Shown here: in pieces, positions 541 through 63,937 of the stretch | Numbering within the stretch: position 1 is the stretch's first letter | How the letters are laid out: every line of letters starts with the position of its first letter | Source of the DNA: Oculina patagonica | Lineage: Eukaryota | Reading direction: 5' to 3' | DNA: 64,000 nucleotides | Assembly (NCBI RefSeq): GCF_052425735.1 | Contig: NC_135761.1 | Span: forward strand, 9,734,001-9,798,000 | Program-made: the position numbers and the translations under genes | The notes under the pieces: generated by a model | The model's input: the letters and a program-made list of their open reading frames with translations, nothing else | What the model was told of the DNA's origin: nothing | The model's database searches: none

Positions 541-660
541 CGAAATCTTTGCCTTGAGAGCAAAATAGTGATTTCCAGTGTGACCAAAATAAAGCCCATA
601 GCGCGGAGTCCCATGCTGCTGAGGAGGGGCGATAACTTTAACATATGAATCGGGCGTATC
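541..660 (-). CDS. OTU-module exon 3, copy A (His box); gene continues off the left edge
   Basis: ttgacag| acceptor and |GTAAGT donor; 120 nt, phase 0/0. Translates DTPDSYVKVIAPPQQHGTPRYGLYFGHTGNHYFALKAKIS. Paralogous to 11376-11495 and 61253-61372. Confidence 0.85.
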
Positions 661-1106
661 CTGTCAACAAAGAATTCGATAAAGTGGATTATAAAATAGC
701 TGAGATTCTTGGGTGAAAATCTCTTATGAAAATAAACGTGGTCACGCCATAAAAGAGAGATGTTGAAGATCCACAAAATTACTCAAGTGGATCAGCCACA
801 CAGCAATATCATTGTTTGTTTATGAAGTTACGATTGAAGAGACTTGGACTAACGTAACAATGTAAGCTATTGGGGAAAGGTATTGGGGAAAGATTCCTTA
901 AATATTTGAGTGGTTTGTAGGGGTTTTATCTCTGTAATCACTTATGTGCCAGGGAGTCGATAAATGAGTTAATGGTATGGTTACTGGTCGCGAGGTAGTT
1001 AAAGTGAGTAGTGACAGTGGTAGTTAGTAGTTGGAAGTAGCAAGTGGCAGTGTCAGTGGTAGTAGGTAGTAATAGTGGGTAGTGTTAGGAGCAGTAGTAG
1101 CAGGTG

Positions 1107-1142
<36 letters not shown>

Positions 1143-1671
1143 TTTATTATTGTATCAAATTTATTAACTGTACCTGAGGGGAAAAGTTCCCTCGCTAGAC
1201 ACCTAGCTTTAAATATAGCTATCAATCAAAAAGAACCCAATTAAAATAACAACAAAAGCAACAACCATTTCATTTTGCCAGAAATAAGTAGAAAAAATTA
1301 CAGCATAAAATAAGTTAACTAAAATAGGCAAAAAAACTACCAGTTACAAAAATTAAATTGCTTTGTCTAGGTGGTACATGATTACAGAAAGAAGACGAAG
1401 GTCAAATAAGACAAGTAATAAGCAATTAAGTACACTGTTACTAAGTATGTATAAATAGTTATTTCGATAAACAGCAGGAAAACATGTGAAAAAAAAGAAA
1501 AAGAAACAGTACCAGTTAGTGTTGTAACCAAAAATTGTTTATATAAGTTTACTACAAGCGGAAAGATAATTAACACACTTAGCCAGCAGTAGCTATAAGT
1601 ACTTCGATAATGCTTTTTCATGTACTATAAATAAGTAGTGGTAAGGGTAGTGGGTTATGAAAACGGCTTAC

Positions 1672-1848
1672 CCCAGAAGTTGTAATAATTGTTATTTTGC
1701 ATTGCAAGCATTCAGACATTGCTCTGATGACCATCTCGTTCGCCCAGCTGTTCCGTAACAAAGTAAGCGCTGCACTCCAGTCGGAGGGAACATCTTGGTT
1801 TTGAATATCGTCACTACATACAAAGTCGAGTCTGTTCTGTCCTAGCGA
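1672..1848 (-). CDS. OTU-module exon 2, copy A
   Basis: tttttag| ... |GTAAG; 177 nt, phase 0/0. SLGQNRLDFVCSDDIQNQDVPSDWSAALTLLRNSWANEMVIRAMSECLQCKITIITTSG contains the OTU W-[AG]-x-E...I-x-A motif. Confidence 0.85.
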
Positions 1849-2071
1849 CTAAAAAAAGTATGTTTTCGTGAAGTCTTGAAAATCTGAGTCATGAATGGTT
1901 TCAGCTTTATTTTCCTACGCAGCTACTGTATAATGTAACTCATACAATTTTATACTAAACGAATAAACTATAAAAAACAATTGTTCTTTAGACTTAAATT
2001 GACATTTTAAAATGACTAAAAATTTAGAACATTCCGGTTAGTATGAGATAAAATTGGATATGAGATGGTAG

Positions 2072-2104
<33 letters not shown>

Positions 2105-2114
2105 ATAACGATCA

Positions 2115-2145
<31 letters not shown>

Positions 2146-2360
2146 ATTTATTAAAAACGCAGGAAGAATTTCAATATTTGAACTTCCCAGCTATTTTCGT
2201 TGACGCGTATCGGCTTCCAAATTGTAGATAAATAATTATTTGATAAGAGATATTTCCTCTGCCACATACACTTCTCTCAAGCTTGTTCACGCAAGCTTGT
2301 TCATCTCTCAAGCTTGTTCACGCAATGTGACCAGTGAGGTGTCATTAAATGATAACTTAC

Positions 2361-2525
2361 ATCATATTGATTCTGGGCCAGATAGTCAAAAATTGAATTC
2401 TTTAGATCACTTCCATTTCTTCCCAGCTGAAAGGCTGCTGCCTTGTAGAAGCAGTCACCGTCACCTTCTGGTTCATAACATTTTTCAAATCCCTGTAACT
2501 CAATTCTTTGCGAAAGCAGGTCCAT
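2361..2525 (-). CDS. OTU-module exon 1, copy A (catalytic Cys box)
   Basis: MDLLSQRIELQGFEKCYEPEGDGDCFYKAAAFQL...NQYD then GTAAGT donor. GDGxC[FL] is the OTU Cys loop. Confidence 0.85.
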
Positions 2526-11495: not shown

Positions 11496-11610
11496 CTGTA
11501 AACAAAAGTTTCTAATTTAAGAATAAAAGAATCGCTGACATTTTCGCGCAAAACTCCTAACAAAAAGCTAGTCATGCGAACGAGGCTCCCGTTCTTTATG
11601 ATATTATGTA

Positions 11611-33097: not shown

Positions 33098-33115
33098 CGA
33101 TACTGCCACAACCAT
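33098..33115 (-). CDS. Putative start micro-exon of cGLR C (MVVAVS)
   Basis: 46-nt exon 33098-33143 with ttttacag| acceptor, caaaATGG start context and TCG|GTATGT phase-0 donor. Conserved in the mirror copy. Confidence 0.6.
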
Positions 33116-36984: not shown

Positions 36985-37468
36985 ATGCTGCAGTTCCTGT
37001 AAGGACCTTTCTACGTTAAAATGTTTGACTACAAATAATAAAAGGAACGAATCTGGAACAAGCGTTGAATCGGGTGCAGCTCAATCCTTTAAAATTGGTT
37101 CACGCATAAAAGTTGGCTTTATATCAAATAAAATTGATGAATCATTCATTCTTTTTTTCATCAGGAAAGCTAACATACCTATTACTGATTTATGCTTAAG
37201 GCTTGTTTTCATCCTTGTACTTGCTTTGCGACCGTTTTGACCGCTTGTGACCGCTTACTTCGTGAAACGGTTACCGCAACGGTAGTTGCCTCACAGGATT
37301 ATAAACTAAGCGTAATACGCGATCATCGAGTCCATTTTATACCTTTGCCTCGTCGTGTTTTCGACACTACTGATTCTCTCGGGATTTATTAAATTTTTCC
37401 TTTCTTCAAAATTGTTCTTATTTTTCTGTTCTTACTTGTTCTTTTACTTAGCTGTCTTCAAAAATGTC

Positions 37469-39409: not shown

Positions 39410-39979
39410 CTGTAGAGGAAAAAGGAAATTGCTGAGTTACACAACGCTAGCACGCAGTGGGATTTGGCATTGTGTGACGAATCAAAAACAAAAGGTTGAG
39501 CAAAAACACTTGGGACACTCGTTGCTCACCGTTGCTCTACAGAGATCTGTAGAGAAACGTGAAATGTTGGCCTGTGCTCTCGGTAGTAGTATTATGTTTA
39601 TGTAAATTTTCACTGAATTTATGGCCAAGCATACTTTTGTATGTGCGTATCACCACCGGCCTCGCTCTTGACTGTCTTTAATACGTTTGTGCCAACTTGC
39701 ACGTTAACTGTAGTTGTAATTGAAGACTAATTGACCTCGTACCTCCAGTCATCAAATTCTAAAGTTTCTGCTTAATAAAGGAAGTAAATTCGGACTTCAA
39801 ACAACGAAATGAACTACCATTTTGTAAAGCAAAGTTTCCTTTTTTTCTAATATGTGTGAATATAGTTCAATTTAGCTCGTTTATTAAACATAATGTGTTC
39901 AGAGAACTCGATTGCTCAAAATGCGGCTTTTTGTAAGCAAAATAAGTCAGTCTATAAATTGACGACCAATGACCCTTAA

Positions 39980-41616
39980 GGTGGATTTCCACTGACGCGT
40001 AAATATTTACGTACGTAAAACGTGCGTAAAAAAAGATACGTAGGCAAATTTCCACTGTCGCGTAAAAAGTAATAAAAAGCGTTTCCTTTTTACGCGCGTT
40101 GAACGTGCGTAAATGCCCGCCATACTGAATTATCAAGTTGGTTAATAGAGTGCGTGATTGTCGGCCATATTGGAGGAGTATAACAATAAATTGTTTTTCC
40201 TTTGGGAAAAAAATCATTAACATTTTTATGCAAATATCTCGTTGCTTGACTCTTCCAACATGGCTGACATGAAAACACTTTGTACCACACGCTAGTAAGA
40301 AATGCGTGAATATGATCAAGAGGCATTTTATAAATACTTCCGAAAGACACCATCAAGTAAAAATAGATTTGAAGCGACCTTCCCGGATTGCCGTTTCAAC
40401 GCCTACGTGACCTAACGCCAGGCGTTTTCTTTCACCACTGCGTTCGTGTAATTTGGTTCTGTAGTCAGTTCTATAGATTATTGCTGGAAATGTTCAAACT
40501 TTTTTCGATGAGAAGTGCTTTTACATCTGAATGTTTTCTCAAGTAAATCGACGGCAATTAAAAACAAAATGGTTTTTCACATGGTAAGTGGTGTCATGTG
40601 ACAAAATCCAAGAGTATGATTGGGTAAATCGCTGCGTAACCGCAGACAGCCGCGAAAAAAGTTAAACTCAGTTCAACTTTTTTGAAAACACTCGCGATCG
40701 CTACGTGCGTATACGTGCGTGTAGCGAACGTAAATACCAAGAAAAAAACGTGGCACTGGAAATTGGACAACGTAAATTCGACGCACGTAATCGCGCGCGT
40801 AAAATTTCATATTTAAGTACGTTTACAGTTCTTACGTACGTTAACACGCGTCAACANNNNNNNNNNNNNNNNNNNNNNNNNNNNNNNNNNNNNNNNNNNN
40901 NNNNNNNNNNNNNNNNNNNNNNNNNNNNNNNNNNNNNNNNNNNNNNNNNNNNNNNNNNNNNNNNNNNNNNNNNNNNNNNNNNNNNNNNNNNNNNNNNNNN
41001 NNNNNNNNNNNNNNNNNNNNNNNNNNNNNNNNNNNNNNNNNNNNNNNNNNNNNNNNNNNNNNNNNNNNNNNNNNNNNNNNNNNNNNNNNNNNNNNNNNNN
41101 NNNNNNNNNNNNNNNNNNNNNNNNNNNNNNNNNNNNNNNNNNNNNNNNNNNNNNNNNNNNNNNNNNNNNNNNNNNNNNNNNNNNNNNNNNNNNNNNNNNN
41201 NNNNNNNNNNNNNNNNNNNNNNNNNNNNNNNNNNNNNNNNNNNNNNNNNNNNNNNNNNNNNNNNNNNNNNNNNNNNNNNNNNNNNNNNNNNNNNNNNNNN
41301 NNNNNNNNNNNNNNNNNNNNNNNNNNNNNNNNNNNNNNNNNNNNNNNNNNNNNNNNTTTTTACGTGCGTTTACGTGTGTGAAAAAATTTAGAGGCAATTT
41401 ATGAACGGCTTGCGTAAACGTGTGCGGAAGTTGTTTATTCATTGTCTCTAATGGTGGATTTCCACTGACGCGTATTTTTTTACGGGCGTTTACGTGGGTG
41501 AAAACATTTAGAGACAATGTATGAACGACTCGCGTAAACGTGCACGCAAGTGGTTCATACATTATCTCTAAATGTTTTGACGCACGCAAAAATTTACGCG
41601 TCAGTGGAAATTCACC
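39980..41616. mobile_element. PIF/Harbinger-derived element(s) at the palindrome axis (spans an N gap)
   Basis: TIR ggtggatttccactgacgcgt after TAA. Plus-strand transposase N-terminal remnant YHTLV/EMREYDQEAFYKYFRKTP (~40283-40352, frameshifted). Minus-strand MADF/Myb-SANT remnant PNYTNAVVKENAWR* (~40410-40460). Confidence 0.75.
40857..41356. other. Scaffold gap (N run)
   Basis: Run of n. Confidence 0.99.
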
Positions 41617-42113
41617 TTAAGGGTCATTGGTCGTCAATTTATAGACTGACTTATTTTGCTTACAAAAAGCCGCATTTTGAGCAATCGAGTTCTCTGAACA
41701 CATTATGTTTGATAAACGAGCTAAATTGAACTATATTCACACATATATTAGAAAAAAAGGAAACTTTGTTTTACAAAATGGTAGTTCATTTCGTTGTTTG
41801 AAGTCCGAATTTACTTCCTTTATTAAGCAGAAACTTGAATTTGATGACTGGAGGTACGAGGTCAATTAGTCTTCAATTACAACTATAGTTAACGTGCAAG
41901 TTGGCACAAACGTATTAAAGACAGTCAAGAGAGAGGCCAGTGGTGCTAGATATGCACATACAAAAGTAGTATGTTTGGCCATAAATTCAGTGAAAATTAC
42001 ATAAACAGAATACTACTACCGAGAGCACAGGCCAACATTTCACGTTTCTCTACAGATCTCTGTAGAGCAACGGTGAGCAACGAGTGTCCCAAGTGTTTTT
42101 TTGCTCAACCTTT

Positions 42114-42903
42114 GGGCGCTTTCCATTTGACCAAAAATTCTGGTTTGAGTTTCCGGAAAATTCCAGTGGCAAATGGAACAGTATTTTCCAACTTTTCCGG
42201 TTGACTGCACGGAAGGCAAAACAAAATTTGCATATGGTCAGGTAGTGCGTCTACTATGGAAATTTCTACGGTGCATTAAAATAATGCACTGTGGCCAGTT
42301 TCCTGCAAATATAACTCGATATTTTTGTAAATAAAAAGCATTCCGAGCACTGAATATAAACGCCATGAATGACATCGTGGTGACAAATACAGGGACCTTT
42401 CAAAAGGCACACTACAAGCAACGAAAACGTCCCCAACCCAAAATGTTTGATGAGCAAAACGTAGCCTGCACGCGCGTTATAAATATTTGTACATTTCAGT
42501 TTGCTGCCGCCTGCAAAGCAACAACGAAAAACAACCGAGTTCACCTACATTTTTTTTGGAGTTTCAAGAATGCTTCCTTAACACATGTAGCTGCTTTCAG
42601 CTGCACAAATCGCTAAATTTTCTGCCGAAGGAACTTAGGCTGAGTGTAAAATGGTAGCTTTTTCCAAAATTTTCTGAAAAGAGGACAACCTCGCAAGGTA
42701 GACCCAAATTTTCGAACACAATTTCCGGGAACTTTCAGTTCCATTTGATTTTGCTTCTGGAATTTCCGGGGGTTTCGGTTGAATGGTTCGCATTTCGGAA
42801 TGTCACCACTTTCCGGATTTTCTGGAAACTTTTCCAGGAAATTTCTGTACCATTTGTCCTTGTTCCGAAATTTCCGGAATTTTTGGTCGAATGGAAAGCG
42901 CCC
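42114..42903. mobile_element. Harbinger-type MITE (right arm only)
   Basis: ttt|gggcgctttccatt ... aatggaaagcgccc|ttt. Absent at the mirrored site ~39490. Confidence 0.8.
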
Positions 42904-42986
42904 TTTGTTTTTGATTCGTCACACAACGCCAAATCCGACTGCGTGCCAGCGTTGTGTAACTCAGCAATTTCCTTTTACCTCTACAG

Positions 42987-44927
42987 CACTCCTCGTTTGA
43001 CTTTGATCAAACATCAAACATATGGCTTCAGCCATTTTCTGCGTTGATTAACTGTATGTTTCCTGTGGAGTATATCTACGCAGATTGGCTTGGATGGCAA
43101 ACAAACAACCAAGCACAGCGGGCAGATCCAGAATGTCTCACAAGTCCATCGGATGCCACTAAAGAGTCTGGAAGTCGCGTTGAAGGATTCTGTATCCCTC
43201 AACTTGTACTCAGAAAAAGTGACATTGACCATGTCAACCCTCTTCAGGTCTTACAAGAACATTGGCAGCCTGATCGTGACACGATGACAGCAAATGATTC
43301 CTTTGTGGAAAATAATGAAAAGAAACTGATACCTATTTTTACTGCTGAACATGCCGAAGACGACCCAAGATACGCAAAGCTCAGACTGACCAAGGAGTGG
43401 AAAGATCATCGACCGCGTTACAAGAATGTTTCCTTTCTTCACCATTCGTTTCTGCTGCCTTCAGCAGAACATCCAATGAAAGGCCTTGAAGAAACGCGTT
43501 TCGACGGCCAAAAGAGCGCGTTGTCCTACGATCTGCACGGTCCTGTACGTAAACTTCAATCAGGCAGTTTTCCAAGTTACGAGGAAGATCAGACAGGCGT
43601 TTTCAAGTATCCAATCGCGTGGCCAGAGCCTGCTATGGAATGGTTGATCCGACAGCGTCCAAGTGGTTGGCCCTCACCTGAACTGGTACAGGAAATATTT
43701 GACGCTGGATGTCATTTGGCCCCTGTTGGGAGAGGAAAGCGCGCTGATGAGCCGGTAGAAACACTGTATTATTGCCAAAAGCCGGAACTGTCAGTAACCA
43801 GTTCCACAGTGCCATCTGCGAGTGGCAACGGAGGAAAAGATGCCATGGATGAAACGGAATGGAGGATATCCTTTTCCCTGGCCGAAAATAGACTTGGAGA
43901 GAGTGTCACTCCCGTGCAACGACACGTCATGGTTTTGTTAAAGATGATCAAGAAGTTTTACTTTCCCGATGTGATTTCAACGTATTATTTGAAGAATCTG
44001 TTGTTTTGGGAATGCGAGAAACAAGAAGAGGTCTTTTGGAAAGAAGAAAACTCCGCCAATTGCCTTTTGTTCCTGTTGGATCGTCTCCAAGAGTGTTTGA
44101 AGGCACATCATCTGCCACATTACATCATGCCCGAGAGTAACCTTTTACAGTATGAAGATCCTGCCAGTCTTAAGGAAGCTGCTGTGATTGTTGGTGAAGT
44201 AAGAAGTAACATTTTACCAAAGACAGTCAGCTTACTGAAAAGGCTTCAGTCAATGAGTTATCTGTCAAGCACATACCTTAAAGATATTGGTCTGCAGTTG
44301 GAAGGCGATCTCCTAAGAATGCAAGAACAAAACCACAAAGATCAAAAGGTACTCCTAAGATCTCTCCACTCACGTTTTGTGGGCAAGTGCAAGGATGTCA
44401 TAGCAAGTATACGAAGAATTCAGGAGAGCTCGACAGACATCGAAAGGGAGTTAAATGTAGCTTTAAATGCTTACCAATCGATGCTGGCAAGAAATCTGTG
44501 CAAATTGTGGCAGCTTGATGAATACCATGACGAGAGTGAGGACGAATTCAAGTCATTCGTAAAGAAAGAAGTCAAGGATCTTTCCTTTGATGATGCTTTT
44601 CTTGCACTGGCACTTGTCTTCCTCGACAGAGCGAAAAATGGAGCTGAGCCCTCGTTGGCAATTCCGACTACAAGAGTGATGAAGCTCCTGAGAGAGGAAC
44701 AGATGCAAATAGCCAAGGAGAACGTGGAAGAAGGAAAAGCACAATTTAAAGGAATTTTGGATTTGCTGAAGAGAAGCGACTTAAAGGATATTACAGAAAA
44801 ATTATCCAAAGAATTCCAAGGAAAGTTGGAAAGCACAGAGGCTATCATTACGCAAGAAGACATGGAGGGCTTATTTAATAGGGAAATTACAGCGATATTT
44901 CAAGAGCGAATGAAAGACAAACAATGA
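42987..44927 (+). CDS. cGLR D', main exon (inverted copy of D)
   Basis: Phase-0 acceptor ctctacag|CACTCC. About 16 aa differences from D by manual comparison; catalytic motifs intact. Confidence 0.93.
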   Translation, partial: HSSFDFDQTSNIWLQPFSALINCMFPVEYIYADWLGWQTNNQAQRADPECLTSPSDATKESGSRVEGFCIPQLVLRKSDIDHVNPLQVLQEHWQPDRDTMTANDSFVENNEKKLIPIFTAEHAEDDPRYAKLRLTKEWKDHRPRYKNVSFLHHSFLLPSAEHPMKGLEETRFDGQKSALSYDLHGPVRKLQSGSFPSYEEDQTGVFKYPIAWPEPAMEWLIRQRPSGWPSPELVQEIFDAGCHLAPVGRGKRADEPVETLYYCQKPELSVTSSTVPSASGNGGKDAMDETEWRISFSLAENRLGESVTPVQRHVMVLLKMIKKFYFPDVISTYYLKNLLFWECEKQEEVFWKEENSANCLLFLLDRLQECLKAHHLPHYIMPESNLLQYEDPASLKEAAVIVGEVRSNILPKTVSLLKRLQSMSYLSSTYLKDIGLQLEGDLLRMQEQNHKDQKVLLRSLHSRFVGKCKDVIASIRRIQESSTDIERELNVALNAYQSMLARNLCKLWQLDEYHDESEDEFKSFVKKEVKDLSFDDAFLALALVFLDRAKNGAEPSLAIPTTRVMKLLREEQMQIAKENVEEGKAQFKGILDLLKRSDLKDITEKLSKEFQGKLESTEAIITQEDMEGLFNREITAIFQERMKDKQ

Positions 44928-45798
44928 AACATTTTTGAAGACAGCTAAGTAAAAGAACAAGTAAGAACAGAAAAATAAGAACAATTTTGAAGAAAGGAAA
45001 AATTTAATAAATCCCGAGAGAATCAGTAGTGTCGAAAACACGACTAGGCAAAGGTATAAAATGGACTCGATGATCGCGTATTACGCTTAGTTTATAATCC
45101 TGTGAGGCAACTACCGTTGCGGTAACCGTTTCACGAAGCAAAAACATCTGAAAACACATCTGAATTCTGGTCCAGGGAAGCATTATTTGACCAATTAGGG
45201 CGCGCGGTGAACAATACGAGATTTCTTCAAACAAGCGGTCAAAACGTTCGCAAAGCTAGTACAAGGATGAAAGAAAGTCTTAAGCATAAATCAGTAATAG
45301 GTATGTTAGCTTTCCTGATGAAAAAAAGAATGAATGATTCATCAATTTTATTTGATATAAAGCCAACTTTTATGCGTGAACCAATTTAAAAGGATTGAGC
45401 TGCACCCGATTCAACGCTTGTTCCAGATTCGTTCCTTTTATTATTTGTAGTCAAACATTTTAACGTAGAAAGGTCCTAACAGGAACTGCAGCATACCGTA
45501 AAATTCCGGTTCTAGCCCCCCCCCCATTCGCTTATAATTACTGAAGCCTCCCTGGTCAGTATAGGCTCATCTACCTGGAAACAACAACAAAAAATATATC
45601 CGGTCATAATCCCCCCCCCCCCCCCCCACAGATATAAGCCCTTCACTGCTGGATAACAGCATTGAACAGGGCTAAACATAAATGCTTTTATTAAGACTTT
45701 GTCCCCCTCCGATATAAGCCCCTCCGTTTATAAGGCCACCCAAAACCCCTTACGAAGTTGTATAAGCCCAGGGCTTATAATCGGAATTTTACGGTATA

Positions 45799-46327
45799 CA
45801 GTCAACTCTCGCCTTGCGGACACCCCGCTATTGCGGACACTCGCTATTACGGACAAAATCCAGATCCCCGGCGAATAAGGTTCGACTGGAAATGACTCCC
45901 GCTATTACGGACTCTCGCTATAACGGACATTAAACGACGCCCCGAGCGTGTCCGCTATAACGAGAGTTGACTGTACAGTCAACTCTCGCCTTGCGGACAC
46001 CCCGCTATTGCGGACACTCGCTATTACGGACAAAATCCAGATCCCCGGCGAATAAGGTTCGACTGGAAATGACTCCCGCTATTACGGACTCTCGCTATAA
46101 CGGACATTAAACGACGCCCCGAGCGTGTCCGCTATAACGAGAGTTGACTGTACAGTCAACTCTCGCCTTGCGGACACCCCGCTATTGCGGACACTCGCTA
46201 TTACGGACAAAATCCAGATCCCCGGCGAATAAGGTTCGACTGGAAATGACTCCCGCTATTACGGACTCTCGCTATAACGGACATTAAACGACGCCCCGAG
46301 CGTGTCCGCTATAACGAGAGTTGACTG
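45799..46327. mobile_element. Three tandem copies of a 175-bp MITE separated by TA
   Basis: TA|cagtcaactctcg...cgagagttgactg|TA three times, period 177. Absent from the left arm (~36682). Confidence 0.9.
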
Positions 46328-48078
46328 TATTGCGATTATCATAGTTACATAATTTCCTTTCGGAACTACTCATTGATAGCTCTTTCTATGCGGTACTATG
46401 CATTATTTTGATGTTTCTTCTGAGTTAAAAACAATGTTTTGTACCATGATTGAAAATATCGATAAAGATAGCATACTTAAAGGATTAAAAGACCTGGAAA
46501 TGATCGAGGACGCGGTTAGATTAATTTATTTTGCTCTGTCTTCATCGAAAGACCTTTTTCAGTGGTTTCTTTGTGTTTAAAATGCGTCAGAGAATGGTTA
46601 TTAGGTCAACTGATAGTTCTTTAAATGAAAAATGCGTTTGGTTCTATAAATGTTGCCGGCACAAGCTCACTGGAAGCTTAGTAGATTTCAATTTCCCGTT
46701 GTTGATATAGCGGGGATAACAGCACGTGGACTATCTCTATCATCTTCTCTCCCCTTTCGGCTGTCCTGGCTGTCGCCCGTGTCAAAACTAAAATTTAACC
46801 GTGGCTAAATGCAGAAAACTGCAGCTTAAACCTACATGTTGAAAACTGAAATCTAAAACGTAACCCCTTCAAAGCCAAATTCGAAAAAAAAAAACAGCTA
46901 ACAATGTAACACTAAAAACTGAAAGGTAAACTCCTAAATTTCCGAAACTGAATGCCTTGATGTCGCTAACTGGAAGCTGAAACCTAGAATAAATAATTCT
47001 ACTCATCTCCACTACGTAGCCTTTGTCATCCTTTGCTCAATTTGTGAATTTAGAGCGAACGTTTAATTCCCGACATAAGCTTAAATTTACGCTGAGAAAA
47101 GCTGGAATGAGTCTTGGTTTTCAGACTCTTTTGCATGGGTGGCCTTAGTGGTTGCTAAAAATAATCTCTTGAGTAACGTTTTATATTTCCTTTTTTAGCT
47201 CCACGAAAAAAATTAAGGAGCTGAAGCAACTGCACGCTTGTGCTATTAGTAAGCTATTGCAGTATCATTATATCATTAAGACCGCAATAAAAGAGAGAAT
47301 TGCCTGCAAGGATCAGATCCACTTAAACGCGGAAACCTGCAGAAAGGGGTACCAAAGAATTTAAGCTTAGACAACAGTGAGCGTGAAGTCTCCATTGAAG
47401 TAAGATATAAGAATGTAATACATTAACAGCTTGGTAATCTAGTTCGCTTTATAAAAAGTTGCAAAAAGCATTCGCAAATAATATGTAGATCTGCTTTATT
47501 GCAAGTATTCGCCTGTTTATACTTCCCCTATATGCTACTAACACCTGTCATTCCCTTTTTAAAACATGGTTGAAGTTCTAAATTTCTTATTTAGTTTAAT
47601 CTTAAGTCTTGTATTCAGTTGTGATTAAGGGTACCGAATCTATTCAAGGTGTTCTGTCTGCGGGTTTGGCGGTGTTAGTTTCAGATAAGTATTAGTATGT
47701 ATAACAATTATAACACAGTTATAGACGTTATTTTATTTGCCCTTATTTGAAAATAGCTAAACTTGAAAACAGCAGCGTGTTTGCTTGGTTAGTTCAAATC
47801 TCCAATCATATGTCATCGAACCGAGCAAACGCGACTACTTTCTAGAGACCAATATTTCCAGATTGGCTTTCGCGTACACTTTTTGCCTTCGCTTCATTAA
47901 TACAACATCGATAGAGGAAAAGGGAGGAAAGAGAAGAATGTAATGTGTTTTCAACTTGATGACTGTTAATATTGAACCCATGGTCTTGTATAAGCGAGAA
48001 ACAATTCTTTTCACTGTTTATATTATAGGTGGTTTGTGTATTCTCGAGTATTACCTTACGGTTCAGGTGACCAAAGTA

Positions 48079-48397
48079 CTATTCACAACACTAATAATGA
48101 TATGCGAAGTTGAAATACACTTAATAATGGGTATTTCATGGCTTATTTAGCAGTCTCACGTGCAATTACGTAACTGCCAATGATAAATTCTGGTTTGGCG
48201 CGAAAATAATTCATTCTAGCTCAGTTTTCAGCGGAGCCACGAAGAGGTGAACGGCCCACCCTCCCACCCAAAAATCGCGTGGGTCGTATCTTGAACACCT
48301 CCTAAGCCAAGCTGTTCCAGCTTGGCTTAATCCGCTGATCAATCATTTTTCCCACACCTTATTACAACTGAGCATGAATATGAATGTTGCTGAATAG
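48079..48397. mobile_element. Small insertion with short TIRs (right arm only)
   Basis: ctattca ... tgaatag. Absent at the mirrored site ~33698. Confidence 0.6.
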
Positions 48398-48968
48398 AAT
48401 ACTTTTGTATGTTGAAGCTCACGGAACATTTGATTTATCTTAACAAAACTCGCGCAGGATTAAGGCGCACGGCTGGTTTAAATAGGGGTTTACATTTACT
48501 TTTGCGATGGTAATAACATGTGCCGTGCCGAAGGTGTACGTAGCTCTGTAAGTGGGTATGGGAAAATGCTCTTGCGGCTATTTTGAAAGTTGAGGTGCTT
48601 TAAATAACACAACCCGTTGAGGTTCTTCGTTCAAAACCGTTCAAGCCCACCCGGGATTAAAATCATGAGCTTAGACGATTAACAAGTGTAGCGAAAGGTT
48701 TCTGTTTAAATTCTCTCTGAAGTACTGCTTCTTTTCACTGTCACGAATGGCGGATCACAAAAAATTATGTGCCTTAATTTTTGAAGGTAGAAAATCCGTT
48801 TCAGTCTTCCTCTTATTCCCCTTTCTACGCCAGTTTCATTTACTAGTTGCACGTAACTATGTAAATCGAAAACAATAAACATCCTAGCTTACAATCCCTG
48901 ACAATTCTGATGCGAACAATATCACAACTTACTTTTACAGGCCTGAGATCTAATCACTTGCAGTCAAA

Positions 48969-48986
48969 ATGGTTGGGGCAGTATCG
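48969..48986 (+). CDS. Putative start micro-exon of cGLR C' (MVGAVS)
   Basis: Exon 48941-48986: ttttacag|...caaaATGGTTGGGGCAGTATCG|GTATGT, phase 0. Confidence 0.6.
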
Positions 48987-49514
48987 GTATGTAGTGTCTG
49001 CGGAAACCACAGTGTTTCTTTTTATGTTGATATTTTCCTTTGTACTTGTGTTTGTGTCTGATCCAGATAAAACTGAAAATCTGACTTTTAACTGTCTGAA
49101 TTGAACCTTAATTTAAATGTGTGTTTTTTGTGTAACTATTTAATTTTGAACAATGAGCATTAATTAGTTTTCGAATATAAAGCTAACTTGGGAACTGAAC
49201 TTTACCAACACTTTATTAAAAAGGGTTTGTATCCATAAATCTAAGGTAGCTCAGAATTGTGTAAAATTGAATTACATAAACAGTTACCCTGTAACTTCAT
49301 GACAAATGTGTTCAGAATTAGCTAGCGTTCTTATATAAGGTTTTGGAGTTTTTTTTTTCTTGATAGCTTTAGCTTTATTAGTTGGTTTTAGCTTTTTAAG
49401 TTGTAGAGTAACATTTTTCCAGTTAGATACAAGTAAGGCGCACGTGCTGGTTGGGAAGAAAAGTTCGTGTGACCCTCTGAGTGTAACGCAACCATATTGC
49501 CTTCTTTTCTACAG

Positions 49515-51476
49515 AATCGCCCGCAAGGCTTTGATGAAACGTCAAACATATGGGTTCAGCCGTTTTCTGCGCTGATCAACTGCATGTTTCCTGTAGAATA
49601 TGTGTACGCAGATTGGTTTGGGTGGCAAACATGGAACGAAGCACAGCGGGAAGATCAAGAATCTCTCGTCAGTCCATCGGAAGCAACCATAGTGGCTGGA
49701 AGTCGAGTTGAAGGATTTTGTATCCCTCAGTTTTTCCTTCGAAAAACTGATGTTGAACGCGGTAGTGTGGTTGATTTTCGTGGCAGTGTGCTTGAACATT
49801 GGCAGCCTGATCTTGATAGGATGGAAGCCAATGATTCTTTTGTTGAAAATAGTGAAAAGAAACTGATACCTATATTCACTGTTGAACATATCGAGGACGA
49901 CCCAAAGTATGCAAAGCTCAGGCTGACCAAAGAATGGAAAGATCATCGACCGCGTTACAAGAACGTTTCCTATCTGCACCATTCTTTTTTGCTGCCTTCA
50001 GCGGATGAATATCATTCCATGGCTGGCCTTGAATCAAATCAATTTGATGGCCAAAAGGGTTCGTGGTCATACGATCTCCACGGTCCTGTGCGTAAACTTG
50101 AGTCCGAAGGTTTTCCAAGTTACGAGGAAGATCAGACAGGCGTTTTCGAATATCCAATAGCGTGGCCAGAACCTGCCATGGAATGGTTGGTCCGACCGAG
50201 GCCAAGTGGTTGGCCCTCACCCGAACTTGTCCAGGAAATATTTGACGCTGGTTGTCATTTGGCCCCGGTTGGCAGAGGAAAGCGTATTGATGATCCCGTT
50301 GATTTGCTCAGTTATTGCCAAAATCCGGAGCTGTCAGGTGCTAGTTCCGCAGGTCTACAGGAGGAATGCAAAAAAGGAAAAATGACTATGGACAACACAG
50401 AATGGAAAACGTCCTTTTCAGTGGCCGAAAATAAACTTGGCGAGAGTGTGTCTCCAGTGCAACGACATGTCGTGGTTTTGTTGAAAATGATTAAGTCATG
50501 TTACTTTCCTAAGGTGATATCAACGTACTGCTTGAAGCACTTGCTCTTTTGGGAAAGCGAGAGGAGACAGGCGGTCTTTTGGAGAGAGGACAACTCCGCT
50601 AACTGCCTTCTGTTGATCTTGGATCGTCTCCAAGAGTGTTTGGAGGCACATCGGCTGCCGCATTTCTTCATTCCACGGAGCAACACTCTGGAATATGAAG
50701 ATCCGTCCAAAATGAATGAAGCCGCTGCCATTGTCGCTGAAGTTAGAAGAAATATTTTGCCGAAGACAGTGAATTTACTGAAACGGCTGCAGTCTCTGAC
50801 TTATCAGTCAAACTCATATCTTCAGGGTCTCGGTTTGCTGTTGGAGGACCATCTCCTAAAGATGCAAGACAGAAATATCTCAAATAAAGATCACAGACAG
50901 CTGCTATGCTCTCTCCACTCAGTCTTTGTTAGCAAGTGCAAAGACGTGATAACAGATTTACAAAGAATCTCGCCTGCGGAGCGCCAAAAGATAGAAAAGT
51001 TGGTAAACGTGTCTTTGTATGCTTACCAATCGACGCTTTCAAGAACTATGTGTAAATTATGGCTTCTCCATACTGATGAACGCAACGACCAGAGGAAGAG
51101 TGAAGACGAGTTCAAATTATTCGTGAAGGAGAAAGTTAGAGATCTTTCCTTTGATGAAGACTTCCTTGCATTGGCGCTCGTTTTCTTTGCCAGAGCTAGG
51201 AATGGCATGGAGCCCTCATTGGCAATTCCTTATACAAGAGTAATGAATCTTCTGAGAGAGGAACAGATGGGAATCGCCAAAGAGGGCATGGAAGAAGTAC
51301 ATAAGTTCTTGAAAGGAACTTTGTTCGATTCGCTAAAGAGGAGTGATCTCGAGAAGATCGAAGAGAAAGTTTCGAAGAAACTCCAAAATGAGGTAGACTT
51401 TATGACAGTTACAAATGAGGAAGTTTTGAGGTTTTTCAGTGAGGAGCTTGCAACGCTTTTTGAAGACAAGATGTAG
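49515..51476 (+). CDS. cGLR C', main exon (inverted copy of C)
   Basis: ttttctacag|AATCGC, phase 0; same NTase and Mab-21 motifs as C. N-terminus nearly identical to C, C-terminus diverged. Confidence 0.93.
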   Translation, partial: NRPQGFDETSNIWVQPFSALINCMFPVEYVYADWFGWQTWNEAQREDQESLVSPSEATIVAGSRVEGFCIPQFFLRKTDVERGSVVDFRGSVLEHWQPDLDRMEANDSFVENSEKKLIPIFTVEHIEDDPKYAKLRLTKEWKDHRPRYKNVSYLHHSFLLPSADEYHSMAGLESNQFDGQKGSWSYDLHGPVRKLESEGFPSYEEDQTGVFEYPIAWPEPAMEWLVRPRPSGWPSPELVQEIFDAGCHLAPVGRGKRIDDPVDLLSYCQNPELSGASSAGLQEECKKGKMTMDNTEWKTSFSVAENKLGESVSPVQRHVVVLLKMIKSCYFPKVISTYCLKHLLFWESERRQAVFWREDNSANCLLLILDRLQECLEAHRLPHFFIPRSNTLEYEDPSKMNEAAAIVAEVRRNILPKTVNLLKRLQSLTYQSNSYLQGLGLLLEDHLLKMQDRNISNKDHRQLLCSLHSVFVSKCKDVITDLQRISPAERQKIEKLVNVSLYAYQSTLSRTMCKLWLLHTDERNDQRKSEDEFKLFVKEKVRDLSFDEDFLALALVFFARARNGMEPSLAIPYTRVMNLLREEQMGIAKEGMEEVHKFLKGTLFDSLKRSDLEKIEEKVSKKLQNEVDFMTVTNEEVLRFFSEELATLFEDKM

Positions 51477-54055
51477 GAATAAAAAGGAAGAGTTTGTAAT
51501 GACAGTTAACTAACTGGAAAAACATCTCATTAACAAAAATGACTTACAAGCAAGTCGGAATTTATTAGAAAAGCTACCCAAAACGGAGGGGCTGAAAAGG
51601 CCAGGTTATAATCTAAGACCTATAAAGGTAACAAACATACAGGAGAACTTTTTTGAACGATGCCAAGGAACCGTTGAACCAGGACATTTATGTCGAAATT
51701 TTACTGGTATTCTTGTGCATAAACGTCTTTAAATTAGTTAGTGTGTAAGTAGATAATCAACTGCGGTGACATATCCCAGTCCACCCATTTATAGCTATCA
51801 AGCCAAACGTCCACTATTGAAGTAACCACTCCCTATGTTTTTTGTATACACAACATTAGTAAGAAATGTAAGAAAGTTTTATGGATTTTTGTATGGGACA
51901 AAAATTCTAATTCTCCGTTGAGAGTTGAGTCTACAACCTTCCACACTGCCCCGATACTCTAATCATTGGGTTATAGGAGATTTGTGACGAGCTAGGCCAT
52001 TTACTGGTTTTTAAATAAATGTGAAATACCTCCCTCGTGCTGATAGGAACAAGAATGTGAAAAGCTATGGTCGAGTATGGTAAAAAGCATGATGAATAAA
52101 TACAAAGTTTAAGCTCGTTCATTTTGTGGTTACTTGTTATCAGAGAATGAATTAACCCAGTGAAGACGCGGAGTGTAACCGAAAGCTAAAGCAAGTAACA
52201 AAGACATTAGCCAAAAAGAGATTTTTTTTCCGATCACCTTTCCTGGTGCTCCGAGGATGCGCTCATGCAATACCTCCGCTCGCTTGTTTTTACACATTTT
52301 GTGCAATTATTACACAGCCTTCTATACCGTGTTTTTCTGTAAATTGCGCAATGGTTCTACTGCTGTTAGAGTCATCTTTGAGCAAGCATATTTGATAATG
52401 GGTACAGTTTTGAAAGCATTCAAGGTCATAGACTACAGAGTAGACAATGTGATTGTAGATGACGCGGTTGTTGAAAAACGTGACTTGTACATCTTTTCTG
52501 CTTTTTGTTGCTTTATTGTTTATGATTTAGCTGTATAGTGTCTATACTGCGTTGCACTGATGTTTTATCGTCATGTGAATTCTATACATATTCCATATCA
52601 AAAATGACGTTAAAGGATGGCCCTATCGTGGTAAAATCGATTACTTCGCCATCCCACACTTCTGATTCTTTATTGTCGATAATAATTCGGACTCACAGGC
52701 AGTTAAAAATAGAACGTGTTATTGGATTGTATGTACCAATTGTTTTCGTGCTTAGGTTGTTAAAATTATGTGTTTCGGAAGGGATGATGACAGTCGAAAT
52801 TTGAAACTTTTAAGTTACTTAAAAGTTACATTTGGAACTACTGACCTGTGTGCAAACCCGTTTAGGTGAGAATACTGATACAGTGGAATACCGATTTCTC
52901 GAGCCTTCCATTTCCAGAAAAACTTCCTGACGATTCGAGCCAAAATTCCTTTGCTTTGGTTTTGCTTTACTGAATTTTACTTCCTATTTTTCAAGTCAAT
53001 TTTTGTTTCCCTATTTGGGAACTAATGGAGGACTGAGAGATCGGGATTCCACTGTCGTTTGCTTTTTTGATAACTTGTAAGATAATATTGTGAGTGCCTC
53101 AATGGTGTGGTGACTTTTACAGGGAATTCACGCGAAAATGTGGATTACGCCATCAAACAATGCTTTTGTTACTAGCTCTTTACCTTTGCTTTGAAAATAA
53201 CTGAAACATGTATATTTTATCTCCTTGGATGCTTGCGCACCCTTGTTGGCGGTCACTGAGATAAGAGTCAAACCACTTAAGGGCCTTATGATCAACTCCA
53301 AAGTTTGCTAACTTTTATAACATTATCTTGTGGTCTATTGTGTGGAAAGCGTTTTTAAATCCCTTGATTAAAAAATATGCGCATGTCCTGCTTAAGATCG
53401 TTCAACCTCGACCAGGACATGCACATTATATGATGCCATTAAATTATATTCCCATAAATAAATTCCATTTCCCAGCCTATTGTTTGCCCAAATTTTCCCA
53501 AATCCCAGTCCCAGTCCTTTTTTGTGTGTAATCCCAGCTACAGAGACCCAAATATCATTTTCCAAGGCCCCTTTCTACGGAAGATATTTTGAGTTAATTC
53601 ACTACCAGATCGAGATATGTTTTACATCAGTTCGGAACATTTATGACTCAGTTTCTTATTTACATGTTTTCCATTTTTATTTCTTTCATGCACGTGCTTG
53701 AGATAGAAGGTAATTTCGGTCCAGGCTCTACCTTTTTCTAGGAATTAGTTCATCTCGCATATTTAGCATCCCATTTTGACATTTCCATGTAAGAACTTGT
53801 CTCAAGGGTATCTAGAAACATTTTTCAAGATAGCTTTTCTGGCCTGAGCACAGATGAAACATCACTGAGGGACTATATCTGCGAAAAACAGACTGAGATA
53901 ACAAAGGAGCTTTCGAATAGCGTCATTTGATGTTTTTCATGCAGCAGTTGAATTCGACGATACTAAAATCACAAATAATCCCATTTCTGCCGAGATAGTT
54001 CTCGACGGCAGACTTGATTTGATTTTTAAAATTTATAGGCCCGCGGCAGTTACAG

Positions 54056-60490: not shown

Positions 60491-60498
60491 CAACTTCG

Positions 60499-60885: not shown

Positions 60886-61252
60886 CTGTCACCACTACCC
60901 ACTACTATTGCCACTACCAATAGCCATGCCATTTCCACATTTCTTGACTCGCTGACACAAAATGGAAAGGAAGTCCTCTTAACCACTCAAACATTTGAGG
61001 AGCCTTAAGCATTTACCTCTCCCCAGTAGCTTATATTGTTGCGTTGGTCCAAGTCTTCTTGATCGTAACTACTTGTCTTGTAAACAAACACTAATATCGC
61101 TGTGTGTGACTGAACCCTTTTGAGTGAGCTTGCATGACGCTTGTGTGATCATAATTGTTTTATGACATGACCTGCCTTTTTTCATTCGAAATTTTCGCGC
61201 AAGAATCTCAGATATTTTATAACCCACTATATCGAAACTTTTCTATTGACAG

Positions 61253-61372
61253 GATACACCCGATTCGTATGTTAAAGTTATTGTCCCTGCTCAGCAACGT
61301 GGGACTCCGCCCCATGTGCTTTATTTCGGTCACACTGGAAATCACTACTTTGCTCTCAAGGAAAAGATTTCA
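61253..61372 (+). CDS. OTU-module exon 3, gene A'
   Basis: ttgacag| DTPDSYVKVIVPAQQRGTPPHVLYFGHTGNHYFALKEKIS |GTAAGT; 120 nt, phase 0. Confidence 0.87.
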
Positions 61373-62514
61373 GTAAGTATTTCGTGACAAACGCCGCCAC
61401 ACGTAAACCGACAGAGTAAGTTAACGAGACAAATTCACAGAAGTAAATTTTTGTCTCGTAAAAGAATAAACCCATAACATTTAAAACTTTTTGTCACTAG
61501 TGTGCTCTTTTGCTCCCTATGATGCTAGTTCAATAAAGTTAATTAAAGCCCTATTCTTATATAACTTTTGTAATGATTTTTAAACGCAATGTAGTCATTA
61601 CGACGCATTTTGGATTTTGTAGGCTGAAATCATCTTATCAATATTTCAATTACATATGAATCTGTAGCCACAAAACTTTAAAAGGAACGTGTCTGATAAC
61701 ATTGGGATGTCTGCTAACATTTTGGTTGTCGTTAGCAGCATACAACAATGGCATCATAAGACACCATATGTACTTAAATATCGGCCACTTAAAATTTCTC
61801 TAGATTTATTTAGTTCATTTATAGCCAAGCAAAACCAAGTAAGTGGAATGAATGAAAGTTCCTTATGAATAATAAGTTTCATCATAGAAGGATATAGACC
61901 ACTAGAAAAAGTTCAAAGAGAAATGATCCTGTTACAAGATCAATCTGCCACCTTGGACTTTTAAGTTCACATCAAGTTCCTCAAGTTAGCGTTAAAGGGC
62001 CTAGTCAGCCTCTGCCATTTTCGATGCCATCGAAATTATGAAAACTGCACAGCGAAGCAAAAGCTTATTGCATTGCTGTAAGCTGTGTTACTGGAAGTCT
62101 GTTTAATTAAATTTAGCAGTTGCACAGTGATCTATTTTGTTTAGACACGCTCTGCGCAAAAATATAATACCGAAATTCCCGTATGTAAACAAAAACAAAG
62201 GCGTGGCTGACAAGGGTCCTTTAAATAACCTGAACTAATAAACAATGGTTTTAGAAATACAAACACAATTATAAAGCATAGAAATTATACAATTTTAAAA
62301 AATAGCTATCAAACCAGGTCGCCATGGAACGTCAAAATTGGTGAGCATGCGATACAACATGAACAATTTCCAGACATCAGCAGCCCCCTTTTCCCTTCTA
62401 AATAGAGTAATCCATCAAGGGTGGAGTAGTATGAAGCACAGTTTGTTTTGTTGAAATGAATACTTTCTTTTATTAATTTTGAAGATACAAATTAACACGA
62501 ATTCTTTTTACCAG

Positions 62515-62609
62515 CGTTGTAATGGAGACTCCTTGATTTCCTGTTGTTCATTGATGTACTTGAACGAAGATAAGGACAAGGTGAAGGCATGTGTCGACAC
62601 ACTTTGTAG
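62515..62609 (+). CDS. PUB-domain exon 1 (UBXN6-like), gene A'
   Basis: tttttaccag| RCNGDSLISCCSLMYLNEDKDKVKACVDTLC(R) |GTAAG; phase 0 in, phase 2 out. Confidence 0.8.
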
Positions 62610-62729
62610 GTAAGCACTGATAATATATTCAACATATCCAGTTCTGCAAGAAACTAACTTCTAACGGGCGCATTAGGTAGCCGTCTCACAACAGTTCTCT
62701 CATCTCTGAAAAAAAAAATTCTAAGATCA

Positions 62730-62990
62730 TTTTCCTTCAGTTTTCACAGCCTTCAGCGACTAGGAGTATTCCTTGCTTGTCCATCACAAAGTTACCCCCA
62801 CTCATAGTTGTAGAGGGGACCCCTTTACTAACTATGCCCCAGCATTAAATTTGCCGGTACCCATTTATACACCTGGGGTAGAGGGAGGCACTGTGAGTGT
62901 CAAGTGTCTTGCCGAACAACGCAACGGAAAGACCCCCTTCTGAGTTCGAATCCGGACCTCTAGATCAAGAGTCCAGCGGGCTATCGCGCT
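62730..62990 (-). mobile_element. tRNA-derived SINE fragment
   Basis: ccggtacccatttatacacctggg...aagtgtcttgcc...ttcgaatcc core, resembling invertebrate SINE2 families; B-box-like sequence on the minus strand. Confidence 0.65.
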
Positions 62991-63047
62991 TCCTATAAAT
63001 TAACATATTTTGGAAAATTAAAATATTCGATTGCTCCGTCTTCCTAG

Positions 63048-63123
63048 ATACCTTGACAACATCCGCAAGGATCCTGAAGAGGAAAAGTATCAAAAAATAA
63101 AACAAAGCAATAAAATCTTTCAG
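63048..63123 (+). CDS. PUB-domain exon 2, gene A'
   Basis: ttcctag| (R)YLDNIRKDPEEEKYQKIKQSNKIFQ |GTAAG matches the PUB signature YL.NI...P.EEKY.KI...NK.FQ. Confidence 0.88.
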
Positions 63124-63858
63124 GTAAGATGTCGAGATTATTATCGATTTACAGCAGCCCCTCTCAAACCATCAAGTAAAGAGAAAATATGGGAAAAAAT
63201 TTCTAACACGCCGCTTTATTCCTCTCACTTAACAACCTATTCATTTGCATTTTCCATGTCTAGGTCAGTGATCCGTTGTGGGGGGGGGGGGGGGGCGGGG
63301 TGTTGGTGGGGGTGGGGAAGGTGTGTTTACTAAACAAAATCAGATAAGCCCAGGTAAAGCACGTAAAACTCTTGAAATAAAATATTGAATAAAAAAGTAA
63401 AAGAAAAAAATAAGTCTTAGAAATACTGTACGTGCTTCCGAGTTGAAAGTTATCTCGAGCGTTAGTGCACAGGAGAAGCCATTGTTTACACAGCAAAGTG
63501 AAAAAAGAACAACAGCAGCAACTACAACAATACCAACAACAGCGACAACTGTAAGTTTTCTTTTCATTAATTATTATCAAGCACTAGACTAGCACGACTT
63601 AAGGTCTAGCCCATTGATCAAAGATCTTTAATAAACCCATTAATTGCGCAGTTCATTACGGGAATTTAGCCTTGATGTATTGTGGGCTGCCTCATTTGAA
63701 CTTGTTATGTGATGAATCACCTCTAAATAAAACCTTTTAGGCTCGATTACCAGTCTCTGTTTGGGAAAGACCTTAATTTGTCATGCGCGAATTGTGGTGT
63801 ATCAACTGCATTCTATGTCAGTTTGTTTTTGCTGACTTTTTCTTGTTTGTTCTTTTAG

Positions 63859-63937
63859 GAGCGTGTGGCGCCCGTCAAAGGAGCAACTGAATTTCTTCTC
63901 GCCTGTGGTTTTAAATACAAAGGTTTTCCAGATGAAG
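63859..63937 (+). CDS. PUB-domain exon 3, gene A'; gene continues off the right edge
   Basis: cttttag| ERVAPVKGATEFLLACGFKYKGFPDE |GT contains the PUB G..EFL...GF motif. Confidence 0.82.

Follow-up and report, generated by a model that had tools for sequence, protein, structure and literature searches.

In the present study, we analysed a stretch of 64,000 nucleotides (hereafter the window) from contig NC_135761.1 of the coral Oculina patagonica (assembly GCF_052425735.1, positions 9,734,001 to 9,798,000 of the forward strand), a species used in bleaching and Vibrio infection studies. Coordinates are given as window positions, and 30 kb of flanking sequence on each side as well as the annotated proteins were also inspected. 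The window is the core of a chromosomal cluster of cGAS-like receptor (cGLR) genes, of which eight loci were counted within roughly 140 kb. The genes have several architectures. In the outer left and right genes (L and R), an OTU cassette and a PUB cassette precede the cGLR exon (OTU-PUB-cGLR); in gene A, the OTU cassette is joined to the cGLR exon without PUB (OTU-cGLR); and in B and B', a start exon precedes the cGLR exon. C and C' were grouped with B and B' as a two-exon type, that is, a tiny start exon and one large exon.

The five cGLR exons of the window lie in stop-free frames of 655-768 codons (7207-9510(-), 30574-32580(-), 37472-39436(-), 42960-44924(+) and 49473-51473(+)), all of which match the Pfam families Mab-21 and Mab-21_C. 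PF20266 scored 58-68 bits against a cut-off of 24.1 in the five exons, and PF03281 also matched all of them, its curated cut-off being reached only in A. The homology spans both the nucleotidyltransferase (NTase) core and the C-terminal helix bundle, as in the definition of cGLRs by Li et al. (2023). In addition, a profile of 17 relatives matched cGLR1 (8gjy), the nearest solved structure, at E 7e-28, followed by MAB21L1, MB21D2 and cGAS. The residues G68-S69, D105-x-D107 and D212 (gene B numbering) are invariant in 17 sequences, from Nematostella to corals, and D212 is aligned with the Asp of SVDLT in 8gjy; the residue preceding GS is A, V or T. Every cGLR here, as well as relatives back to Nematostella, also carries a C-terminal extension of about 250-370 residues (for example 30574-31330(-) and 7207-8300(-)). 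It had no match in Pfam or the Atlas and no fold match in the PDB (AlphaFold2 (AF2) model all-alpha, predicted local distance difference test (pLDDT) 72).

An initial annotation, made from the letters alone, had claimed that the five exons start at phase-0 acceptors at a homologous position. This was borne out and its coordinates proved exact. A pyrimidine tract and YAG stand before each acceptor (9510, 32538, 39409, 42987 and 49515), each exon opens with a whole codon five codons ahead of the FD(E/Q)xS..W motif, and the seven acceptors (these five plus those of L and R) share one alignment column. The acceptors are used by two independent annotations, that of the GenBank submitter and RefSeq. 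Furthermore, the type-A cGLR exon has no ATG until codon 33, and the stretch from the acceptor to the first internal Met is conserved in coral and anemone relatives, to Nematostella, which argues against translation from internal ATGs. The same annotation had given C and C' a six-codon start exon ending in TCG/GT. Such an exon was found for the pair with acceptors at 32538 and 49515 (our B and B'), which its labels may mean; for the 39409/42987 pair, none was found between acceptor and gap. The start MAES of C' in RefSeq could not be located in 124 kb.

The OTU cassettes were located by self-tblastn. A Pfam scan of the 529-Mb genome did not list those of the window, because their sequence is divided among exons and more than 140 transposon OTUs scored higher. 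Each cassette consists of three exons (55+59+40 codons in the left copy), each in phase 0 at both ends, and the terminal phase-0 donor that had been reported for the module is present in all three copies (11376, 541 and 61372). When spliced, the cassette scored 27.6 bits (P0107) and 31.5 bits (P0209) against the Pfam OTU cut-off of 23.3 (PF02338, profile coverage 2-119 and 2-128, respectively); single exons alone scored below the cut-off. Cys25 (GDGDCFY) and His145 (GNHYFAL) are invariant in an 11-sequence alignment and are present in 3/3 window copies. The AF2 model of the OTU has a pLDDT of 90, and its best PDB match is the OTU domain of OTUD3, with template modelling (TM) scores of 0.70/0.76; the top matches were OTUD3, OTUD5, OTUD1 and nairovirus vOTUs, at probability 1.00. 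The OTU protease of the cGLR fusions is apparently active. Every cassette has its own type-A cGLR exon immediately downstream on its strand, and the single OTU module that the initial annotation had proposed to be shared by the cGLR exons was replaced by three cassettes, each serving one exon.

The PUB cassette begins in phase 0 at 62515, as had been predicted, and has four exons with outer phases 0/0 and inner phases 2, 0 and 1. PF09409 scored 91.4 bits against a cut-off of 34.3, and the PUB domain of human UBXN6 (residues 159-273) was matched at E 6e-24; the UBXN6 structure entries 8fcl-8fct are p97-UBXD1 complexes. The four exons match, exon by exon and at 72-83% identity, a gene on another chromosome (C2:39.91 Mb) in which the exon after PUB encodes a UBX domain, and which is the UBXN6/UBXD1-like gene of the coral. 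Boundaries and phases are identical in the two (0, 2, 0, 1, 0), down to ...TGTAG/GTAAG and ...CTAAAG/GTAAG, and the synonymous divergence (dS) between them is 0.40, with an omega of 0.34. The PUB cassette is evidently a DNA-level copy of four internal UBXN6-like exons, placed in the OTU-cGLR intron. Symmetric phase, together with retention of the internal introns of the donor, is the mark of exon shuffling, and it was found in both the PUB and the OTU cassettes.

In gene A, RefSeq joins the donor at 11376 to 9510 and predicts an OTU+cGLR protein of 922 aa without PUB (XP_078365086); no PUB remnant was found in the intron. The submitter's model of gene A skips OTU exon 2, which is possible because this exon is in phase 0 at both ends. 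In the right gene, the cGLR exon lies outside the window (66973-69213, 747 codons), and ACROYT_G011998 (949 aa) joins OTU exon 3, the four PUB exons and cGLR R. In the left gene, the PUB exons and a cGLR exon with at least two frameshifts lie left of the window (about -8122 to -10337), and this OTU-PUB-cGLR copy is decaying. RefSeq divides the left gene between LOC144649483, in which the OTU is combined with PUB exon 1 or with an alternative junk exon, and LOC144651387. Thus, of the products that the initial annotation had derived from the same parts, OTU+cGLR is found in gene A and the cGLR without OTU is found with start exons; OTU+PUB was a truncation by the window edge, both such genes running on to a cGLR exon outside it and being in fact OTU-PUB-cGLR. 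The features are collected in Table 1.

Table 1. Features of the cGLR cluster in window coordinates (a slash marks the splice site).
Feature	Positions	Strand	Details
OTU cassette l (left gene)	2361-2525, 1672-1848, 541-660	-	exact map of RefSeq XP_078365102 (P0114); donor TCG/GTAAGT at 541
cGLR exon A	7207-9510	-	768 codons, stop 7204-7206; type-A; phase-0 acceptor just before 9510; 100% match to P0001/P0107
OTU cassette a (gene A)	13178-13342, 12529-12705, 11376-11495	-	RefSeq XP_078365086 (P0107), exact; donor TCG/GTAGGT at 11376
Inverted duplication (palindrome)	30391..51650		left arm 30391-40020 pairs with right arm 51650-41576; self-BLAST
Two-exon cGLR B	30574-33115	-	start exon 33098-33115 (MVVAVS, TCG/GTATGT) and main exon 30574-32538; XP_078365087 (P0112)
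cGLR exon C	37472-39409	-	646 codons from the acceptor; Pfam, acceptor sequence
Assembly gap	40857-41356		unique spacer at the centre of the inverted duplication; non-coding on both sides
cGLR exon C'	42987-44924	+	XP_078365090, RefSeq "cyclic GMP-AMP synthase-like receptor 2"
Two-exon cGLR B'	48969-51473	+	start exon 48969-48986 (MVGAVS, TCG/GTATGT) and main exon 49515-51473
OTU cassette r (right gene)	56457-56621, 58476-58652, 61253-61372	+	donor TCA/GTAAGT at 61372
Assembly gap	59385-59932		inside one hexamer minisatellite, intron 2 of the right OTU cassette
PUB exons 1-3, right gene	62515-62609, 63048-63123, 63859-63937	+	exact map of ACROYT_G011998 (P0004)
PUB exon 4, right gene	64977-65101	+	beyond the right window edge

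We consider it probable that the locus holds an old fusion family, which was built by exon shuffling and amplified by tandem and inverted duplication, and in which OTU and PUB would control the cGLR in cis. Several points weigh against this. The published cGLR motif is h[QT]GS-X8-20-[DE]h[DE]h-X50-90-h[DE]h (Li et al. 2023), and the spacings found here, about 25-38 residues from GS to DxD and about 104 from DxD to D, both exceed it; therefore, catalytic competence of the cGLRs is likely, short of proof. The N-terminal half of the cGLR core gives no sequence alignment to solved cGAS structures. An assembly gap interrupts the right gene, whose OTU exons 1-2 are left separate from the remainder in both annotations. 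RefSeq models the left OTU as a separate short gene (LOC144649483, 185 or 220 aa), and therefore OTU cassettes can be transcribed without a cGLR. In two sequencing runs, no contig shown crosses the junction of OTU exon 3 with the cGLR exon (11376 to 9510), and therefore the fusion at the RNA level rests on two gene-prediction pipelines and on conserved collinearity. Finally, the inverted duplication, which is centred on a scaffold gap, could partly be a haplotype mis-join.

The transcript data are low-depth contigs of two runs of one study, presumed to be RNA, and cover gene A only. Contigs lie over the cGLR exon (7501-8336 and 9142-9430), over OTU exon 2 (12528-12705, where 39 and 32 letters at the ends of the records are unplaced) and over OTU exon 1, starting at its donor (13178-13330, where 26 letters are unplaced). 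The contig ends coincide with the donor of exon 1 (13178) and with both ends of exon 2, and the unique intron sequence of gene A is uncovered by contigs. This is the pattern expected if the OTU cassette is spliced and the cGLR exon expressed. The contig joints shown lie mostly within intronic repeats (11653-12495); a joint at 11508-12518 was disregarded as non-canonical.

It may be asked whether the OTU, or OTU and PUB, are independent small genes upstream of the cGLRs, with the fusions being read-through models. The stand-alone RefSeq gene of the left copy (P0114, P0209), the split of the same copy by the submitter (G011992 and G011991), the lack of a junction-spanning read among those shown, and the lack of this OTU cassette in any other annotated protein of 507-1613 aa would agree with such an artefact. 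However, the residues of the type-A exon that precede its first ATG are conserved, cassettes a and r have no terminal exon or stop of their own, and two independent pipelines join OTU and cGLR. The copy that is split is the one with the frameshifted cGLR exon. In addition, three assemblies hold six loci at which a cGLR is immediately preceded by an OTU cassette of the same orientation and a compatible phase. We therefore regard an annotation artefact as quite unlikely. Outside the window, the submitter's ACROYT_G011988 (C4:~9664000, about 70 kb to the left; P0113, P0024) fuses a cGLR to a Lon protease C-terminal domain, which the RefSeq model of this gene lacks; adjacent genes have probably been merged here, which calls for caution on fusion models in the submitter annotation.

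The relationship of the genes was examined in a maximum-likelihood tree of 24 cGLR proteins. A, L and R fall, with ten proteins from other assemblies, in a type-A clade (100/100), and the B/C genes fall in a second clade (100/100), among whose members are a protein from Montipora and clear orthologues both of C and of G011988, a gene next to the cluster's core. The two gene types thus parted long ago. Proteins of Nematostella and Actinia likewise open with few residues and then FDE. Given these starts and the common alignment column, the shared phase-0 acceptor was inherited rather than gained by repeated insertion, and we infer that the intron predates the coral/anemone split. Phase agreement alone is weak evidence (order 0.02-0.04 by our own rough, uncomputed estimate, which assumes about 45% of introns in phase 0), because only about 4-5 of the phase-0 introns are independent.

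The linkage of OTU genes and cGLRs in other coral genomes, which the initial annotation had put forward as a check, was found. In the ENA assembly ERZ25067872, one contig of 1.1 Mb carries G011988-like, C-like and B-like cGLRs on one strand and in that order, and downstream of them OTU exons 1-3, the four exons of a PUB cassette and a cGLR exon of type A; this order and strand are those of the right arm of the window. In ERZ25067556, OTU exons 1-3 are followed by a cGLR without PUB, twice, interleaved with B-type genes, and these OTU-cGLR genes belong to a deeper type-A subclade. Thus OTU-cGLR or OTU-PUB-cGLR genes adjoin two-exon cGLRs in at least two other coral assemblies. On a 7-kb contig of GCA_044670265, PUB exons are immediately followed by a cGLR exon that forms the sister of gene A (90/98). 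When OTU exon 3 plus PUB, and the OTU cassette, were searched against 5.8 billion protein clusters, only the models of Oculina itself were returned, and an exhaustive HMMER search gave 95 matches, mostly exon-sized open reading frames (ORFs), with no named species having an annotated OTU-cGLR.

The OTU cassettes (a, l, r and the copy of another species) differ by a dS of 0.44-0.57 with an omega of 0.11-0.25, the PUB has an omega of 0.27-0.36, and the type-A cGLR exon (A vs R) has an omega of 0.53, evolving faster than both. The OTU is under strong and the PUB under moderate constraint. Purifying selection on the OTU would be consistent with function; activity and substrate are not thereby demonstrated. 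The pairs B/B' (dS 0.107) and C/C' (dS 0.029) are both young.

The initial annotation had concluded that the locus is an exon-shuffling hotspot. The shuffling itself was confirmed by the UBXN6-like introns of the PUB and by the recurrence of the OTU cassette; the hotspot was not, with the acceptor inherited and the architectures conserved. An active hotspot of shuffling or combinatorial splicing, in which OTU, PUB and start-exon modules would at present pass between many cGLR exons and one 5' module would serve several 3' exons, would draw on the fact that all module boundaries are in phase 0, so that any join is in frame, that gene A lacks an entire cassette that L and R have, and that RefSeq gives alternative 3' ends for the left OTU gene. 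However, every OTU cassette has a single type-A exon immediately downstream on its strand, the three cassettes differ by a dS of about 0.5, and no cross-gene joint was seen in the transcript data, which are those of gene A. The four two-exon cGLRs have their own short start exon and stand in their separate clade, which speaks against plug-and-play sharing of the OTU. Several independent, recent rearrangements, or one 5' module joined to several 3' exons, would mark a hotspot; we found one architecture per clade, and the only architectural change within the locus is that gene A has no PUB. Other coral assemblies show these architectures and this gene order as well, which indicates an old and stable arrangement, and a hotspot is thus highly improbable.

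In the fusion family built by exon shuffling that we favour, the OTU-cGLR would have come first, with the fusions arising by exon shuffling before these coral lineages split. The PUB would then have been inserted at the base of a nine-member type-A subclade and, in the simplest reading, later deleted in gene A; such a deletion keeps the frame because the cassette is in phase 0 at both ends. Tandem duplication and an inverted duplication centred on the first gap would have led to the present layout.

The left arm of this palindrome carries B and C and the right arm C' and B'. In the self-BLAST, the arm blocks are 93.5, 99.2, 97.0, 98.4 and 95.0% identical. Identity is therefore patchy, with 93.5% over B/B' (30391-33698 vs 48400-51650), 99.2% in the intergenic block neighbouring B/B' (35029-36681 vs 46328-47981), and 98.4% over C/C'. 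This suggests arm-to-arm gene conversion or faster divergence of B, and it fits a palindrome with gene conversion. The inner palindrome might instead be an assembly artefact, in which two haplotypes of one B-C segment were joined inverted and the true copy number in the window is three rather than five. The position of the gap, exactly at the centre of symmetry, is as such a mis-join would leave it, and so are the arms, which reach 98-99% identity in places, and the low dS of C/C'. However, the dS of B/B' and the patchiness of the arms (93.5-99.2%) resemble paralogues with gene conversion more than alleles, the outer flanks are non-allelic (the left has gene A and 17 kb more), the L and R proteins are about 72% identical, and the right arm alone reproduces the gene order of ERZ25067872. 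We consider a mis-join unlikely, and a genuine inverted duplication is preferred.

The two N runs of the window leave all exons untouched, and ORFs listed across them are artefacts from translating N. The second gap is flanked on both sides by a CACTGC/CCACTA hexamer array (58834-59384 and 59934-60468) and was probably caused by this minisatellite, which occupies at least 1.6 kb (58834-60468) of the second intron of the right OTU cassette. Between genes A and B, an inverted-repeat pair (15898-16923 / 17467-18492; 1,026 bp, 99.7% identical, about 540 bp apart) may be a foldback or hairpin element; the ORFs inside it had no Pfam match. The left and right OTU start codons are each preceded, at a distance of about 700 bp, by a block of 745 bp, 80% identical between the two sites (3219-3926 / 55097-55794). 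A retroelement fragment adjoins the right OTU cassette on its upstream side (54390-55070(-), zf-RVT, E 7e-13), and a Pfam search of seven other ORFs of the window found only this zf-RVT fragment.

The origin of the OTU cassette was approached through its relatives. Its closest paralogues, at 43-50% identity, agree with it in all three exons and in their phases. On their own strand and within about 150 nt to a few kb downstream, they are followed by long transposase-like ORFs of the Mutator-like element (MULE)/SWIM type. These ORFs are multi-copy, two copies being 99% identical on different chromosomes. We recorded such MULE-linked cassettes at C4:10257443-10261119, C9:10841294-10846854, C4:37579543-37589660 and C2:26916930-26923716 (ORFs of 825-908 codons), and the MULE/SWIM-like ORF has at least 49 genomic matches. 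No convincing phase-0 acceptor was found downstream of these OTU cassettes that would splice them to the MULE ORF. Many other OTU matches in this genome lie in Helitron-size ORFs (at least 2,000 aa). In contigs of another organism (P0116 / P0210, Logan), the OTU cassette stands at the N-terminus of a kinase, at 43% identity and in one continuous ORF; it is followed by two internal repeats and a protein kinase domain, an architecture that resembles those of innate immunity. OTU or Ulp1 proteases have been described in DNA transposons, with OTU in Ginger1 and Helitron and Ulp1 in Mutator (PMC2836005), and the paralogues beside multi-copy MULE/SWIM transposase-like ORFs are alike in this respect. 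In the literature searched, we found neither an OTU beside a MULE transposase nor the reuse of such a cassette in an immune receptor. A further step would be that a transposon-borne OTU cassette, of the type now seen before MULE ORFs in this genome, was captured upstream of a cGLR and, with the UBXN6 PUB exons, made a self-regulating sensor, in which the OTU would free the receptor itself of ubiquitin or a ubiquitin-like modifier and the PUB would recruit p97. We put this forward as a doubtful extension of the fusion family.

As for the function of the fusion, the cGLR part would sense a ligand and make a cyclic dinucleotide. The OTU in cis would strip the receptor or its partners of ubiquitin or a ubiquitin-like modifier, thereby controlling the stability or activation of the receptor, and the UBXD1-type PUB would dock the tail of p97/VCP. 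From domain identity, ubiquitin editing and p97 recruitment are plausible; a role of the OTU as an integrated decoy is possible and unsupported here. It has been shown that OTUD3 deubiquitinates and stabilises human cGAS (PMC13194595). The two cases are alike in that an OTU-family deubiquitinase controls, or in the coral would control, a cGAS-family sensor, and the OTU domain of OTUD3 is the best structural match of the coral OTU model. They differ in that the human proteins are separate and act in trans, whereas the coral has one polypeptide; moreover, identity to OTUD3 is 19%, and the nearest relatives of the coral cassette are transposon-linked OTUs rather than OTUD3 orthologues. Compared with UBXN6/UBXD1, a p97 adaptor with PUB and UBX, the PUB cassette shares all four intron positions and phases; it differs in that only the PUB exons were copied, UBX being absent, and in that it now stands between OTU and cGLR.

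In type II CBASS (an antiphage system that signals through cyclic oligonucleotides), Cap2 (E1/E2-like) and Cap3 (a JAB isopeptidase) regulate the CD-NTase (PMC10097602, PMC11153139). Both cases link, at the genetic level, a nucleotidyltransferase of the cGAS family with a protease of the ubiquitin world that removes conjugated modifiers. However, the bacterial enzyme is a JAB metalloprotease encoded in an operon, whereas the coral has an OTU cysteine protease in a fusion. At the coral locus, OTU and PUB were the only accessory domains found, with neither an E1/E2-like Cap2 nor a JAB-type Cap3. The coral fusion is an independent eukaryotic invention by exon shuffling, and its likeness to CBASS is analogy only.

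Expanded cGLR repertoires of corals, with fusions to ankyrin, death or TPR domains and multi-cGLR proteins, were reported by Li et al. (2023, PMC9980059). The genes described here share with those metazoan cGLRs the Mab-21 core and helix bundle, the expansion in stony corals and the occasional domain fusion. They differ by the fusion of an OTU and a UBXD1-type PUB and by the all-helical C-terminal extension. OTU and PUB are unmentioned in the text of that paper and in its seven supplementary files searched, and no cGLR fused to either was found described in the literature searched. About 98 Mab-21_C matches were found genome-wide, many in tight arrays (C11:18.54-18.68 Mb, C4:55.2-55.3 Mb, C10:16.36-16.58 Mb and C12:2.40-2.45 Mb), and the cGLR expansion of O. 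patagonica is at least as large as that reported for Stylophora. Coral genomes are known to carry tandemly duplicated innate-immune receptor genes (Noel et al. 2023, PMC10236652). The present locus resembles those arrays in having recent and ancient local duplicates whose assembly and annotation are difficult. The receptors covered in that study are of the TIR, NACHT and lectin types, with cGAS/Mab-21 and OTU unmentioned, and the locus adds an inverted duplication. The cGLRs thus join the tandemly amplified immune receptor families of corals.

The locus is an unusually clear case of exon shuffling, in which one cassette can be traced to a donor gene that retains all of its introns and the other also occurs with transposon genes. 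In bacteria (Cap2/Cap3) and mammals (OTUD3 and others), the control of cGAS-family enzymes by the ubiquitin-type machinery always works through separate proteins. A cGLR-OTU-PUB fusion that is conserved under purifying selection in several coral genomes points to hard-wired control and would offer a compact system for the study of deubiquitination and p97 action on a cGLR. If the capture of the OTU cassette from a transposon were true, the fusion would be an animal, single-polypeptide counterpart of the bacterial cGAS controlled by Cap2/Cap3, with its assembly still legible in the introns.

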